Source: Oikopleura dioica
Taxonomy: Eukaryota; Animalia; Chordata
DNA: 64,000 nt
Assembly: GCA_907165135.1 (NCBI GenBank)
Contig: OU015567.1
Span: 11,594,001-11,658,000, forward strand
Direction of reading: 5' to 3'
Under the pieces are notes generated by a model. It made no database searches. It was not told the DNA's origin and saw only the letters and a program-made list of their open reading frames with translations. Made by a program: the position numbers and the translations under genes. Below are positions 51,696-60,100 of this stretch, in pieces. How positions within the stretch are numbered: position 1 is the first letter of the stretch; each line of letters opens with the position of its first letter.

Positions 51696-52477
51696 TAGGG
51701 TGGGGATACAGAAAATGGACTTTTTACTCGTAGCAGCAACGATAAAAACTTTTTGGGATAAGTTATTTTATTGCCAACCAAAAAAAATTCTTGAAAAAAA
51801 AATTTTGAATTTTGATTGTCACGTGATGAAAATCGCCATTAAAAGTGCCAAAAATGCCAAAATAGCCGAATGAACATGGATTTTTTTTATTCTCGGATAT
51901 GTGATAGAGAATTTGATTCTGAATCTAATGGTACCAAAATCTTTTTGGAATTGCATCGAGAAGGTACTTTAATCTACAAAAAACTGCTATATTACGTAAT
52001 AATTGATGACGTCATAAGCAAAAAAACACTGTAAATTACTGTAAAATGTAGTATTATAAGTGTTGAAGGTCATAGAACGACTGTAATTGACTCCGTAGAG
52101 TACATTTTGTTGGTTTTAGGTGCAAAAACTGACTTTTAAAATAACCATGACGTCATTAGTGATGACTCATTTTCCAAAATTATTACGTAATAAGGCATAT
52201 AAATAGTCATTATGGATCTTTAGGAGGCCGATTCCAAAAAGATTTTGGTACCACCAGATTCAGAATTGAATTCTCTATCACATATGCAGGAATAAAAAAA
52301 ATCGATGTTCATTCGGCGATTTTAGCATACATTTAGTGCTTTCCCACGTGACCTGAAAAAATTTCAAAAAAATTTTTTTTGCCAAAAAATTTTCTGGGGC
52401 TGATTCCATCTTGTCACCAAAAATAAAGTCTCTACGACGTTTGCTGAGAAAGCTCATTTTTTTGTGTCCCCTCCCTA
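51696..52477. mobile_element. Non-autonomous palindromic hAT-like element, 782 bp
   Basis: Ends TAGGGTGGGGATAC..GTGTCCCCTCCCTA. 8-bp TSD AGCATGCC at 51688-51695 and 52478-52485. Long imperfect internal inverted repeat (GCCGAATGAACAT..GGTACCAAAATCTTTTTGGAAT). Confidence 0.9.
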
Positions 52478-52792
52478 AGCATGCCGGAGGAAACCTTCAA
52501 GCAACGCGCCTCGAGGCGAGGAAGCATGTTCCAGCCGAAGAGAGAGATCCCCCGAGATTCTACAGCAGTTGTAAGTACACTCAAAGCTCTTCTTGTTGAT
52601 TGATTATTTCACAACAAGTCAGAGGACGCAGTTTCTTGTGTACTTTTAGTCGATAATTTGTTTACTGAAAAGTTCTCTTCTTGCACCTCTGGGTTATTTG
52701 AGCGCAGTGTCAAGTTGACGGCAAATCCTAGCGTTACAATCAGTCAACTAGGCCAGTACTTCAACAATCGACACTTTAGTAAACAGGAAATT

Positions 52793-52805
52793 GGGTCCTA
52801 GCAAC
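52793..52805 (+). promoter_or_regulatory. Possible RFX X-box
   Basis: GGGTCCTAGCAAC has a strong TAGCAAC half-site and lies ~40 bp upstream of a ciliary dynein light-chain ATG. Confidence 0.45.
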
Positions 52806-52844
52806 ACCCAAAAGCGGGAAAACTAGAAAGAGAAAAACAGTTTT

Positions 52845-53577
52845 ATGGCGATGGTGACCCCAAATATCTACAGACAAAGTGTAATCTTTCAATTTGTATA
52901 ATTTTTGAAGGAAAGCCCTTTTTTATTTTTTACAGAAATAAAGCTGAATTTCTAATTCTTACTCAATATCGACGCTTCGAATCAGGAATTATATTTGACT
53001 AGAATATTTCTCAGTGCAAGACTTTCAAAATGATTGACAGCATAAGACCCTGCGCTCAAAATTCCTTCCAACATAAACTAACTTTGTCTTTTTCAGTTCA
53101 GCTCAATTCTTTCGATGCAAGAACACCAGAAAAAGAACCGTCCAAAATACTTAAACACTTACAAAATGGAGCCTGATAAAAAGATGAACATGTTTAAAAT
53201 CAAGAACTCAATGCAAAAATGTCTTGAGAGTAAGACTTTTTGGAAGAATCATTCTGATCCGTTTTTAGAGCTTTGCGAGGACAAACAATTTGAAGAAGTC
53301 GTAGAACGAGAAATGATCCGAACAATTAACAATCAACTTCATAATAAAGTCAGGGACTTGGTGCCAGATAGATACAGATTCATCGTCCAAGGTAAGCTTA
53401 CCCATCTTTCATTAACTAGTCAAGAATTAAGTCATTGTGTGCGAGCGAAACGACAACGACTTCAGCATTTCTTCACGCTCGCTCATGAACAACGATCACG
53501 ATTCATACACGTCCGTCAGCTATGCCAAAGGAGATATCGTCGTCGTCGGAATCTGTCACGTTCTCTACCTCGAATAA
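52845..53577 (+). CDS. Tctex1-domain dynein light chain (TCTEX1D/DYNLT family)
   Basis: YLNTYKMEPD, VRDLVPDRYRFIVQ|VIVCE..ISSRSLMNNDHDSYTSVSY..VVGICHVLYLE*. Confidence 0.85.
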
Positions 53578-53792
53578 TCACCGACAAACTGATATTTTAT
53601 GGACTTGTACTCGAATAAAAAATATGAAACTGCTATAAAACAATGCAAAGAAAAGCTCTTTTCAAAGTTTTTCTTGGTAGCAACTATGACATCAATATTC
53701 TTAGCAAGAAAGGTAGAGCAAGAAGAATTCTTCATTGTGAAATATTCGAGAGAGATTTTCGACTGAATGAAATGTGATAACCGACCTTTGGC

Positions 53793-56700
53793 TTACTCAT
53801 GGTCATTTAGGCTTCGATGAAAAAGACCGTCGAGCTGATAATAGAAAACTAAGTAATTTCAACCGATGACCTTTTCCTGATTGGATATAAGAGGAACTTT
53901 GACCGTTGTCTTCTCTGATGAGCTGTTTTTGAAGACAAATGCTCTGTCTTCTTCGTCGAATCCATACATACACATTGCGTGCTTGATGTTTTTCAGCTCA
54001 GTTCTAAGCATCGATTTAAAACACGATTAAATTTGTTGATATAACTTGACTGGGCAAACAAGAGTCTTTTTAGAATCTATGGCGCTGAAGAAATCTCCAA
54101 TGATTCCGAATTTCTTGAAAGTTGCCGGAAATTTGTCAAATTCCGTGGGATGTGAATACACTTCCAGCACTGGTTGAACTTCCCCGATTCGATAGAAGAT
54201 TGGTTTCAAGCTGCCAAGAAGGTGTATACCTACATCAGTTAAACAATTCAGAAACAACACATTCTTAACCTTCTCGCTGGAGAAATGTCGGGCGTGAAAG
54301 TCTTTGCATGACATGGTGAAGCAAGGCAGCTTGTATTTCATCTTCGTTTGCATTTATTTTAGTCGGAATAACGTTCATCATCAATTCTGATCTCAAAGTC
54401 TACCGAAATCTAAATATACTTTGCTCACATCAGACTGCTGACCTTGTGATGCGACGGATCGCCGAGAATCTTTAAAATTGCATCCCTATTTTCTTCCGTC
54501 AGATCTGTATTGTCTCGTTTTCGTTATCTAGTGGTTTTAGTGAAAATAAATCAGAAATAGTATAACGAGTCCTTTGATGGTTTCACGGAAGGAAGATCGT
54601 AACATGCTCGCAGTCGCGAAAGCCCAACATTTGAACGAGTTACCCTATCAATCAAAAATTAAACCAAAGTTAAAAATTTAACCTGTTCATGAATTCTTTT
54701 GCTGATCATTTTAGTCGTCTTTTGAGGATATACTGTTTGTTAGTTCATAGACAATTTTCAATGATTTGAACGATATCCGGCCTTTGAAAGTTCGGCATAT
54801 GATGTAAAACTGTTCAGCGTATCCATGATATTCACGGCCGAGAAAGGACACTGCTCGAATTTCGCTACTCTCCGCTTTACATCACTATCAATGCTCCCAT
54901 CCAGAGTCTGCAAGTCTGCACTGATTCCAAGATCCCTTGCCGTTACTTTCTTGCCGTTCAGAGAGCTTCGATGGTGGGTCAAAAACATCTTGACTTGTTT
55001 TATGCTCGGCCTTTTTGACGGATCATCTGAGATCATTTTGGAAATGAAACATGTCAATTTGTGTTTGAGCGCTTCTTCTTTTGCAGATCGAAGGCTTTTA
55101 CTGTCAACTAAAAAAAATTGATATTTCAGAGAAGAAACTTTCAACCTGGAAGCATGTAGAGCTTGAACGCTAACTGTATATCGAAAATAGAAAGCAGAAT
55201 CGAAATGCCAAGCGAATATATGTCCGAAAGAAAAGGAATCGATTCAGTCAAAACTTCCGGGGCCATGAATAGAGGAGTTCCACCGATAATTCCAGCCATG
55301 CCGAAATCAGCCAGTCGAACGGAAAAAGTGCCGGTTTCATCACTTTTGAGGAGAATATTTTCTGGCTTCACATCGCCATGACATAGACCTTTTTCTCCGA
55401 TTGCCTTCAAAGCAGATGTGACCTATGAATTTCGTGAGTTTTGAACGCGATTATTAAAAACCTGGAGAAAATAATTCATAAAGGAGGACATCTGGAACTC
55501 GATCTGGTTCAATGTTGCATCGCACAACTCGGAAACAATGACAAACTCGTCTTCTCCATTTTTATGTTGCAAGAAGAAGTCAAACATTTTCAAAACATGC
55601 GGATGTCTTATTTCCCTTCCAATGTAGAACTCGGAAGCCTGGCCTCTGAACTGCTGCGCCATTTCCTTTTCTCGCATCGGATCCATTAATTTTTGAGGTG
55701 CTTTTTTAAGAGATTGTACCAGATGAAGTCCGCGATTTGGAATGAACTTGGCCGCTGCATTTTTGCCGTGCCAGGTGCACTTGTAGACCGATCCTTGGCC
55801 TCCGTTGCCAAGAAGATAGTTCTTCTCGATGAGCTGACCGGAAAAGTGTCGCATAGATGGAATCCTTTGCTTACAATTTCTTGGGCATTTCTCATCGCAG
55901 TCAATATTGTAAAGAGACATGTAAGTCGTCGTCAAAGGATTTCCTTCAGATGAGTATCCAGTCACGTACTTTTTCACCAACTCTGCGTAAGATTCAAGTT
56001 GCTGGATTTCGTGTTTATACTGCGTGAATGAGTCCGTTCGGAAATAAAGACTCTTCTCGAGTCTACAGTCTTTTAAATCTTCATGTGCATCGAAAGCGTA
56101 TTCAATCAAGTACCAGTTAACAGCATTTGAGTCAACGGGGCCGTAATTTGAAGCAATAAATGGATTCAAGCCTCGTTCAAGAAGCTTGCTGATGAGTGGC
56201 TGGAAAGTTAAACCAAGACTGTTGGTGTAGAAGCCGCAAAAGTTCATCTCTAAGTTGGGGAAGTTGTCCAAAAGAAAAATTGAAGAGCGATAATAATGTC
56301 GAGTCGCGTAAAAGGGAAATGTGAATGCAAGTTGGGTTGGAATCGAGATGACTTCTTGCGCTTCATCGATCGATATATCGTCAAGCATTTTTGACATCAA
56401 GAAAAGCATGGTCTCATCATTTGATGTCTGCATTTCGAATATTTCTTTTTTGGAGTATGCGCATTCCATGAACAATATTCTCATAATGAATTCGTTCGGC
56501 GCTGTGAAAACCGTATATCCACCAATACTGTATGTCCAATCGATCGAATCTTTTGAAAGAAAATTCAGTGTTTGAATTAAAAATGCCTACATTGATCCCA
56601 GAATTGACTCTTCAGTATATCGAAATTGAAAGTGAAGCTTGCAACAACCCGAAAGTGACTTGCACAAGCTCCATTTTGCAAGTCGATCTTCATGAGTTCT

Positions 56701-57176
56701 TCAAAAGTGTGCGGATCAGTGTTTTGCGTCTTGTACTCGTTTTCCCGATTACTTTGTTTCAGAACCAAATTAAGACCTTCAAAATGATTAGTGATGAATT
56801 TATAATTATAACGCAAACCTGCGTATCCTCCAGGAAGATTAAGGGTTTCCTTCCGTGAATCAATCCGATAAAGTTCTGTTTCGAGCTAAAAGGGAGCAAA
56901 GAGTTGTTTTCTATTTATACTTTTATGAAGACAGTGACCCCTTGCCTTGTGAAAATGTTCTGAAAGAGAATAGCCTTCGTCATTATCGCCAATGAGTTTT
57001 TTTAACCTTTTATACACAGCGATTGCATCAAGAATATCCGCGTCCGAGGATCGCTGAATAATCGTATCGTAAAGAATCAGTCTCCCTGCTGCGAGTTTAG
57101 AAATCGTTCCAGCATCTATCATTTTCGTCGAGGCCAAGCTCCAGAATTCAAGTCGACTCATCTCTGAGGTTCCCAT
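53793..57176 (-). CDS. Multi-domain protein: unknown N-terminal region + Ser/Thr kinase + papain-like (C1) cysteine peptidase domain
   Basis: Kinase motifs LGNGGQGSVY, AAAK, HGDVKPENIL, DFG, GTPLFMAPE, SDIYSLG, KRPS. Downstream in-frame exons give HEQ|GNSFKCWAFA, KHAMCMYGFD, FVFKNS. The 3' end is approximate. Confidence 0.75.
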
Positions 57177-60100
57177 TACTCTCTCGCGAGGAGGAAACTT
57201 TAGAAACTTTTTGAAAACGCCAACTTATCGTGGCGCTATAAATGAAGCACCGAAAGTTTAATCATTGGTTAATAATATCGATCCTTTGGAGTACTTTTCC
57301 GTACATCCGTTTCAAGGGGACAAGAACTCTGAGTCAAGAAGCAGTCAGAATAATTATGAGGAGGAGCGATACCCAGTGTTTTCTTCCATGATTTCACAAG
57401 ATCAAACACAGATCTGGCTAGAACTTTTCTGTAGATTTATTATTATTTGCTTTTCCACAGAATCCAATCGAAAAATTCGAGTATTTAATAATTTAGAAAA
57501 AGGATTCTGGAACAGAATCCGCTAAAAATTTTTAACGAGGGTCAAATCACTTTCCCACACTCCTCAAAAACGTGACCCCTAAAGCAGTTTACTGCCCGAT
57601 GTCCAGGCCTAAATTAGAAAAAATACTTCCGGAAAAGGTACACAAATCAAAAAGTCGCTTGACCTCGGTCGCTTTTTGGGGAGTTTATAGCGGGTTTTAT
57701 ATTCAACAAATATGCTTACATCCTAAGTTTGTTTATGAAATTTTGAATTCCTATAATTTTCCCTGATGTTTTGCCGATAAAATTGGTGAATATAATGAGT
57801 AGATTAAAATGGGTTCCTGAAGCACAAATGATTCAGCATTTTATAACCATTGCTTGAATAACAATCAATTAACTCGAAAAATAAGCACGAATCAAAGTAC
57901 CGACTCATGGGTTTTTATTTACGACTAAGAAAAACGGCATTTTACGAGGCTAAAAATGTCAGAGTTCTCCGCTGGTCGAGATCAAAGGCAAGGTATTATC
58001 ATCGCGGGCGGGGAAAAGCTCAATTTTCGCTAAATTTAGATCAGTACGGGAAATTTTTAATTTGGGGATGTGCACTGGCATGGCGCCGCGCCAGCTGATT
58101 GCCCCGACTCTATTTTCAGATTTCGAAAAAAAAATCGAATATTTTCTGTATAAAATCTTTTCCTATTTCCATAATTTGAAGTTTCTTTAATCCTCATTGT
58201 CAAAACTAACAAATCGGTAGACACGTGATATGTACGAACGGGAAAAACACGTGCTAGCGCTAGTATTTTTGGCAGGCACATAATATCATGTAGATTAGAT
58301 ATTGTTCTAGGACTTTTTACATGGGCGAAGGTGTTTTATGAATAGATTAGCTTGCGATTTGCTGTTTTAGTGTACAATAGAAATAGCCAAAACACTGAGT
58401 TTATGGTAGTTCTCATGTCCGTTTTGTACTTTTAGCAAATTGAAAACCGTATCTCAGGGATATGGCCGGAATGTGGCCAGCTGAGACTGGCCTTTTTCTT
58501 AATAAAAATTTAAGTTAAAACCTTCCATCAAGAAATTTATCATTGAACCTTGCTGTTTGGAAGTCATAAATCCCAAGAATTCAGAGGAGATACAGAGGTT
58601 GGTTATTGATCAGTGGAGTGACGCGAAAAAAGTTCTCAAGTAGACCCTTGAGTGTTGCGATTAGAGCCGACACGTGACTTCAAAGAGCGATTATTGAGAA
58701 TAAATCCGAAGATCGTTGGTGTTATTAAACGGCGCGTACATTTTTATAACAAGCACGCGCGTTCTTTGGACTTCAAATTTATCAACCTGCGCGCGTCAGG
58801 CGCCATTTTATCGAGTCCAGGAGAGGCTCTCAGTGTGCCTTGCGCAAATTTCATGGAAGCTGATTCTTGAACAACATTGTTACTCTTTCGTTAGGCTTAG
58901 ATTTGATAAGAATCTTAATTTTCTTCTGAAAAGTGCCCCTTTGAAAAATAATCGCAAATCGGAAGTGTCGCATCCGATCGGATCTATTTGAAGTCTTCGT
59001 GCCCTAAAAATTTTCCTTCACGCAGATTGTCACTAAAACAGTTACCAGGTACAGGTAGCAGCTGATTTCCGCTTTTATCTACTCCGCTTTACGACCTGTT
59101 TTCAGAACGGTTATTGATCAAGATCGAGGTTTAAAAAATAGAACTGATGATGAAGCTGATGGTTCACAGGTGCTTCTCCTTTCTAGGTCAATTTATGCTA
59201 GAAAATCAGGTCATTCAAAACTTCCAAATCTTGTATTCTTGCCCTAGAAGTTCAAAAAAATCAAGATATCCCAGTAAAAACAGTAGGCTTTTGCATTTAT
59301 GCAGCTCCCGTGAAAGAGCATTTCCTGATCCACTTTTAGAATTTCCTCCGATGAGCGAAATAAACTTTCGCCTTTGATCAAATTTGCCTTTCAAAACAGC
59401 TTCGAGACATTTTCCCGCTTTTTGAAAACTTCAAAACTTTTCATTCAAACAAAAACTTTCATTCCTCGAATTTCGAAAAGAGTCTATATCAAAATTTTAA
59501 GATAGTAGTATCCGGAAAGGATATATAAAAATCCACAGGGCGCTCCTGTCCGTCTCCTGATACAAGCCACAAAGACACACAGGAGTAAGTTACAGTACAC
59601 TCACGGAAGACAACGAAAACCGCTACTATTTCCAAGTCAATATAATCAAGTCTCGCGATACTGCCGGTTTCGGAGGCGACTTCGCGTCTGTGTCTGTAGC
59701 TGCTGTGAATAGCCCCTTTAGTTCCGCTTATTTCTGCTGAAGAAGAACTTCAAAAGTCGCCCCCGGATGTGCCATTTCCGTATCAAGCTGGATTAGCGTT
59801 TTGTCAGGGCAGTTTTTGGGCTCTTGAGATTTGATTTTGCGCCCCGGTCGCTACAACAAAAGTGCTCAATCAATTCCAGTACTTTTCATCTCAAAATAAT
59901 CGCGTTATTGAGCCAAAACGGCCGAATAAAAAATCTACGGAACTTGTAACTTTGATTTCTGAAGTTCTTTCAGACGTCAATTGCCCACGTGCAGCATGTT
60001 TACTGTCAGCTTAGAGTGCCCCATCTGTAGTGATACAGGCTGACCTTTTCCAAATTCTTACTGTCAACGGTCACTACAGCCAGTTTTTTATCACTCTATC

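Follow-up and report, generated by a model that had tools for sequence, protein, structure and literature searches.

A candidate kinase and divergent papain-like cysteine protease in one predicted chain, encoded by a gene family of Oikopleura dioica

A papain-fold domain and a protein kinase within one chain have been described in the EDR1/CTR1-type Raf-like kinases (PMC10318531), the sole precedent that we met in the literature. The EDR1 domain (PF14381) lies N-terminal to the kinase, is similar to the C71/C93 type rather than to C1, and occurs in plants and protists (PMC10318531). We found no description in the literature of an animal protein that joins a kinase to a C-terminal C1-like cysteine protease, in agreement with a prediction made earlier from the letters of the DNA studied here (the original prediction), according to which no standard animal kinase is known to have such an architecture; the literature on Oikopleura gave nothing relevant on a kinase with papain or on the kinome. 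Here we describe a gene in a stretch of 64,000 nucleotides (nt) from chromosome 2 of Oikopleura dioica OKI2018_I69 (G000:C5:11594001-11658000, hereafter the window). Its product is likely to combine a kinase and a functional papain-derived catalytic domain in one chain, while any specific coupling of kinase and protease is proposed with clearly less confidence. Both enzyme types are textbook knowledge and it is the domain architecture that is new.

The gene lies on the minus strand and runs from an ATG at 57176 to a stop codon at 53732. The model built from these coordinates has 13 exons and 953 residues, and a frame check found zero internal stops in it. The original prediction was confined to 53793-55900; the motifs are indeed there, but the gene extends from 57176 to 53732 and its last exon (53791-53732) had been missed. 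Three-frame translation placed the three peptide motifs of that prediction in open minus-strand frames and in the proposed order, the Gln-Gly/Cys-Trp-Ala-Phe motif being split over exons 54718-54683 and 54644-54572, and the His and Lys-Asn-Ser-Ser motifs lying together in exon 54003-53871. The predicted protein comprises an N-terminal region (about residues 1-400), the kinase (about 404-660), a linker of about 75 residues and the C-terminal domain (about 720-953). The joined 953-residue model served for the checks of frame continuity and for residue numbering alone, and the queries for searching and folding were single exons or the public models P0045, P0050, P0047 and P0053. The exons are the following:

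Exon 1, 56946-57176, minus strand: start codon (57176) and beginning of the N-terminal region; open frame from the ATG, 31-51% conserved in paralogues.
Exon 2, 56819-56885, minus strand: N-terminal region, placed by paralogue alignment.
Exon 3, 56591-56776, minus strand: N-terminal region; the Tyr at the junction agrees with the paralogue models.
Exon 4, 55462-56549, minus strand: rest of the N-terminal region and kinase N-lobe (Gly-loop, Lys429), recognized by Pfam Pkinase; nine copies in the genome, and a metagenome open reading frame (ORF) 97% identical to it.
Exon 5, 55146-55422, minus strand: kinase catalytic loop HGD (Asp541), DFG and APE; Pfam Pkinase, expect value (E) 3e-13.
Exon 6, 54782-55107, minus strand: end of the kinase C-lobe (Pkinase profile positions 221-258) and linker, conserved in paralogues.
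Exon 7, 54683-54718, minus strand: 12 residues, the last of them Gln737 (codon 54685-54683), which is presumably the Gln of the oxyanion hole; His-Asp/Glu-Gln ahead of the Cys exon is kept in every paralogue, and the NCBI model skips this exon.
Exon 8, 54572-54644, minus strand: putative active-site helix, Cys743 (codon 54629-54627) followed by Trp-Ala-Phe; aligns to cathepsin K Gln19-Cys25 and to an exon of an O. dioica cathepsin L.
Exon 9, 54443-54513, minus strand: variable helical segment.
Exon 10, 54270-54399, minus strand: best-conserved block of the C-terminal domain, 75-93% identity among paralogues.
Exon 11, 54046-54229, minus strand: middle of the protease-like domain.
Exon 12, 53871-54003, minus strand: His898 (codon 53981-53979) and Asn916 (codon 53927-53925); nine copies in the genome.
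Exon 13, 53732-53791, minus strand: conserved Gly-Tyr-His-Ile-Ser-Phe strand and stop codon; missed by the NCBI model; in four paralogues it runs on directly from the His exon.

The NCBI model of the gene, CAG5113133.1 (P0045, 692 residues), has one coding sequence that includes both the kinase and the C-terminal domain. Compared with the 13-exon model it is incomplete, being without residues 1-200 and 693-737 (the Gln exon among them) and without the last exon. In the rest of the genome, the exon pieces are collinear in every paralogous locus by tblastn, in a series that starts with the N-terminal exons, continues with the kinase and reaches the His exon. In searches of the whole genome, the long N-terminal/kinase exon and the His/Asn exon each have exactly nine close copies; these are always at the same loci, and neither exon has a stand-alone copy among them. 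A tenth and divergent member (L044, G000:C2:8026500-8033500, at 8.03 Mb), missed by the searches for close paralogues, has the kinase, the Gln/Cys exon and the His/Asn exon (hhalign 97.6% and 82.7%). The original prediction had proposed a search for paralogues in larvacean proteomes; the O. dioica genome yielded nine close, collinear copies and a divergent tenth.

A more distant relative, from a marine eukaryote, is carried by the Tara Oceans contig L041 (ENA ERZ908196; 2046 nt, 35% GC), which is without close counterpart in the O. dioica genome. Here the kinase tail and the Gln/Cys motif are found within one open exon, and the next exon holds the His, the Asn and the Gly-Tyr strand. Since the kinase tail and the Cys motif share an exon in this contig, two separate genes are very unlikely. 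In P0050 the linker and the Gln motif are in a single exon, and the NCBI models join the kinase to the C-terminal domain both for this gene and for paralogues. The claim that in-frame exons link the kinase to the protease motifs is borne out by the uninterrupted frame, the joint NCBI model, the nine-to-nine co-occurrence and the L041 exon. We read the locus as one gene of 13 exons, predicted to encode the kinase and the papain-type domain in a single chain. The architecture is conserved in at least ten O. dioica genes and in divergent marine relatives, and the family is apparently restricted to Oikopleura-type organisms.

Some further observations concern the members of the family. The His and Asn motifs of L041 resemble classical papain more closely than the O. 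dioica motifs do. The NCBI models are often faulty at the paralogous loci on C4, C5 and C1, where P0047 (1480 residues) fuses two tandem genes, P0036 is chimeric, with N- and C-terminal parts that are unrelated, and P0053 and P0003 are halves. At the first tandem copy (L013/L019, G000:C4:12.564 Mb) the catalytic-loop exon matches in two overlapping pieces and the NCBI model is without the His-x-Asp loop. This copy may have a frameshift, and hence a dead kinase, with protease-like exons that look intact. A 458-residue ORF from Logan was ruled out as a spliced product, being genomic read-through of an in-frame intron.

The kinase domain was predicted to be intact, and it gives 104.6 bits on Pfam Pkinase (PF00069; P0045, cut-off 31.7, E 8e-30) with the full set of catalytic motifs: the Gly-rich loop, the catalytic Lys, the His-x-Asp loop with its Asn, DFG and APE (model residues 411, 429, 541, 563 and 580). 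The catalytic loop is HGD, of the non-RD type. Among solved kinases, the best matches are no better than E 1e-11 and are spread over several groups (CHK2, DAPK3, JNK and the bacterial PknG). In this sense, it looks like a divergent, unclassified eukaryotic protein kinase, active-looking and of Ser/Thr type.

The N-terminal region of about 400 residues, which the original prediction called uncharacterised, has no match in Pfam, NCBIfam or the PDB and, outside Oikopleura sequences, turned up only in fragments of marine metagenomes. A phmmer search with the long exon against 1.8 billion representatives gave nine matches at E <= 1e-10, all exon-sized fragments of 95-384 residues, and apart from such fragments the representative library returned only generic kinases; the matches to the N-terminal region that were traced belong to records of O. 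dioica or to ENA/Logan assemblies. A word-index search with a region of P0036 gave zero matches. The N-terminus of the protein is not hydrophobic, and the protease-like domain follows the kinase and the linker, as expected from the earlier statement that signal peptide and propeptide are lacking. Because signal peptide, propeptide and disulphide cysteines are all missing, the protein is presumably cytosolic.

The C-terminal domain, of about 215 residues, has Gln737, Cys743, His898 and Asn916 in papain order. Gln737 is six residues ahead of Cys743, as in papain, and Cys743 is followed by Trp-Ala-Phe, while His898 and Asn916 are 18 residues apart (16 in papain). The last exon encodes a conserved Gly-Tyr-His-Ile strand, the counterpart of the Gly-Tyr strand that follows the Asn of papain. 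The four papain motifs pointed out originally (Gln, Cys, His, Asn) are more than a chance occurrence: nine close paralogues repeat them in the same order, and so do two divergent relatives. All ten genomic copies retain the four residues, as does L041; in a metagenome fragment, P0065, Tyr replaces the Asn. The Cys-Gly-Ser-Cys motif has another residue for its Cys, and the conserved disulphide cysteines are lost. Between paralogues, the ratio of nonsynonymous to synonymous substitution rates (dN/dS) on the protease-like blocks is 0.03-0.15, with dS saturated. The protease-like domain is under strong purifying selection, and from these ratios we conclude that it is maintained by selection.

Its relationship to the papain family was addressed with profiles. 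A single sequence against the PDB gave nothing significant, and a first, narrower family profile reached cathepsin K at E 0.6, also not significant. A wider profile (A6), composed of the family plus the divergent members L044 and L041, matched cathepsin K among 177,635 PDB sequences at a borderline E of 7e-4. The alignment covers two stretches, the Gln19-Cys25 helix and the region of His162/Asn182, and nearly all of the 72 weaker matches listed for this profile are C1A peptidases. Against the exon of an O. dioica cathepsin L, the hhalign probability went from 54% to 81% (E 1e-5) across profiles. These results come from the alignments A3, A4 and A6, given that the MAFFT alignments A1, A2 and A5 misplaced exon fragments. 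The domain profile, in a word-index search, matched family fragments and one true C1 fragment (71% match, E 8, non-significant), and nothing else. At the structural level, all ten listed ESM Atlas neighbours of the C-terminal part of P0050 belong to the papain clan (template modelling score by query 0.43-0.54), and the same is true of the ten listed for P0045 (0.49-0.58). These neighbours come from the C1, C39-like, C70, phytochelatin synthase and BtrH-like families. In the AlphaFold2 models, which are of low confidence, helices precede strands, as in papain. Overall, homology to the papain family is supported as real but borderline, and the domain may be viewed, with the same borderline support, as a fast-evolved descendant of papain-family (C1-like) cysteine peptidases.

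Several observations weigh against an active papain-type protease fused to the kinase. The assignment did not hold up at the Pfam threshold: Peptidase_C1 (PF00112) gives 12.7 bits on P0050 (cut-off 20.7), Peptidase_C1_2 gives 12.8 bits, below its cut-off, and P0045 has no match to Peptidase_C1 at E up to 1. The weak matches to Peptidase_C1_2 in the Cys region (E 0.053) and in the His exon (E 0.023) are both below the cut-off as well, and apart from this hint, Pfam scans of the C-terminal exons taken one by one stayed at noise level. For being below the Pfam cut-off and without the zymogen layout, the domain is classed here as divergent C1-like and not as a regular member. The Trp that follows Asn-Ser in papain is replaced by Ser. 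Most of the significant signal comes from the Cys helix; taken by itself, the His half is non-significant. The Atlas models are themselves of low confidence, with a predicted local distance difference test (pLDDT) of 0.51-0.54, and two AlphaFold2 runs (alignments of 27 and 48 rows) were too poor (pLDDT 40 and 45) to give a view of the triad geometry, Foldseek on the better model returning noise. Finally, three bulk and one single-cell RNA runs placed zero reads on the gene (examined span 53300-57400); they carry the same species label, and their lineage diverges by 5-10% already in the neighbouring gene, so they are no test of expression.

This absence of transcript evidence, and the frequent errors of the NCBI models of the family (one tandem merger, one chimera), would suit the explanation that the kinase and the protease-like part are two adjacent genes, or that the tail is a decaying pseudogene, misjoined by the models. 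Nevertheless, between the two parts there is no stop, no start and no long spacer, their copies co-occur nine to nine and collinearly, single exons bridge them in L041 (kinase tail and Cys) and in P0050 (linker and Gln), and dN/dS values of 0.03-0.15 do not suit a decaying tail. We regard this explanation as hardly credible. It is somewhat less remote, yet still very improbable, that the papain likeness arose by chance or convergence and that the C-terminal region is an unrelated lineage-specific fold with short papain-like motifs. AlphaFold without a confident fold, the non-significant single-sequence searches of Pfam and PDB, and the E of only 8 at database level for the 71% match to a true C1 fragment are what could be expected of such a fold. 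It leaves aside, however, four motifs correctly ordered and spaced, the cathepsin K profile match at E 7e-4 with both stretches in register, two independent Atlas models with papain-clan neighbours only, and the predicted order of helices first and strands last.

The main rival accepts the fusion as real and takes the C-terminal domain for another papain-fold thiol enzyme (deubiquitinase-like, transglutaminase, acyltransferase or deamidase) or for a substrate-binding pseudo-enzyme that serves the kinase. The papain fold carries many non-peptidase chemistries (PMC10318531), and the Atlas neighbours include C39-like, phytochelatin-synthase and BtrH-like proteins beside C1; the lost Trp of Asn-Ser-Trp and the scores under the Pfam C1 thresholds point in the same direction. 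On the other hand, the Gln, Cys, His and Asn of peptidases are all kept in every genomic copy under strong purifying selection, and the sequence matches are specific to C1A peptidases and not to other clans. We consider a non-protease role unlikely, and a papain-derived catalytic domain in one chain with the kinase continues to be the reading that we favour.

The introns are of 38-79 nt, sizes typical of the O. dioica genome. Nine are GT-AG, one is GA-AG and two are best read as GC-AG. The ones that deserve description are the following:

Intron, 54514-54571, minus strand: GA-AG, 58 nt, with a 7-bp stem that joins its ends (fold z-score -1.9).
Intron, 54719-54781, minus strand: ahead of the Gln exon, GC-AG preferred.
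Intron, 56886-56945, minus strand: donor probably GC-AG; an alternative GG-AG donor may lie 6 nt downstream.
Intron, 56777-56818, minus strand: GT-AG, takes out a 42-nt in-frame insert absent from the paralogue models.

The two introns that link the protease-like exons to the kinase had both been described as GA-AG with stems. The stems are present in both, and for 54571-54514 GA-AG is the sole frame-compatible junction, also used by the NCBI model; the other intron is more likely GC-AG (54781-54719) than GA-AG (54777-54733), an alternative that keeps the frame, adds six residues and starts the exon at 54732. GC-AG is preferred there because the same junction occurs in the NCBI paralogue model P0047, because P0050 carries that stretch as one exon, and because the terminal stem then lies as far from each intron end as it does in the GA-AG intron. 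An end-joining stem forms in all three non-GT introns (z-scores -1.9, -1.25 and -1.85), and of two GT-AG introns taken for comparison, one has a weak AU-rich stem and one has none. In the two internal non-GT introns (54514-54571 and 54719-54781) the stem begins 3 nt past the 5' end and stops 7 nt short of the 3' end. The current O. dioica annotation truncates, merges or splits genes of this family, partly because of its non-GT introns.

In the neighbourhood, a 98-nt inverted repeat (arms 51854-51951 and 52231-52328, 90% complementary, 279 nt apart) looks like a foldback or MITE-like (miniature inverted-repeat transposable element) sequence, located between the neighbour of the gene and an upstream carboxylesterase-like ORF. 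The neighbouring gene (52481-53618, plus strand) is covered by RNA reads from the divergent O. dioica lineage at 90-95% identity. These reads skip 53392-53434, and at the joint they show three different letters, which means that the neighbour's intron differs between lineages. Elsewhere in the genome, L034 (G000:C5:2119273-2119803) is an intron-poor C1-family gene with a 353-residue open frame and Ser-Phe-Ala-Phe at the position of the active-site Cys, and it may encode an inactive cathepsin-like protein.

As regards function, the C-terminal domain is predicted to be an active thiol hydrolase, most likely a peptidase. Kinase and protease would act on a common pathway within one chain, where one activity could control the other, or the two could share a substrate bound to the N-terminal region, a likely recognition or regulatory part. 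The protein may be a phosphorylation-gated protease or a defence/signalling effector, as the original prediction proposed. A more ambitious proposal, which we judge improbable for the moment, is that larvaceans evolved their own families of single-chain kinase-proteases, in which a sensor-like N-terminus, a kinase and a cytosolic papain-type protease form a self-contained switch for signalling or cell defence. Autophosphorylation might activate the switch, followed by proteolytic release or cleavage of a substrate. If this were true, the switch could partly replace signalling or defence pathways perhaps lost in this lineage. Being conserved, multi-copy, under strong purifying selection and apparently restricted in its distribution, the family is a good candidate for a signalling or defence chemistry peculiar to one lineage, in a chordate with a compact genome.

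The comparison with known systems places the gene apart from each of them. Relative to EDR1, the domain order of the O. dioica protein is reversed, its papain-like domain is C1-like and the organism is an animal; in P0045, P0050 and P0047, PF14381 has no match at E up to 1. The same genome provided two comparison stretches (L043 and L045). Locus L043 has a kinase followed by a papain-like domain, whose Asp-Gln ... Cys register aligns with that of the gene. It differs in an atypical kinase catalytic loop and in a Cys without the following Trp-Ala-Phe; the hhalign comparison of A3 with L043 gives a probability of only 3% (E 0.014), with the active-site registers coinciding, and BLASTP finds the kinase loop only. 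The gene appears to belong to a small clade of about ten genes, separate from the L043 type, whose kinase is canonical and whose active site is the closest to that of papain.

With the papain family C1A (cathepsins K and L), the C-terminal domain shares the Gln, Cys-Trp-Ala-Phe at the start of the long helix, the His, Asn-Ser and the Gly-Tyr strand at near-identical spacing, and also a helical half that precedes the beta half. Unlike C1A enzymes, it is without signal peptide, I29 propeptide and conserved disulphides, sits C-terminal of a kinase, has Ser for the Trp after Asn-Ser and remains below the Pfam cut-off. In this sense, the family shows how far a papain domain can drift below that cut-off with its active site retained. 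Bleomycin hydrolase and aminopeptidase C (C1B, Peptidase_C1_2) are cytosolic, have neither propeptide nor disulphides, and carry His-Ala-Met at the catalytic His, as in the O. dioica domain. On the other side, the C1B matches are all under the cut-off, the hexamer-forming extensions of these enzymes are not apparent here and C1B proteins carry no kinase. By analogy, the cytosolic C1B enzymes, such as bleomycin hydrolase, would be the nearest in lifestyle to this putative kinase-protease.

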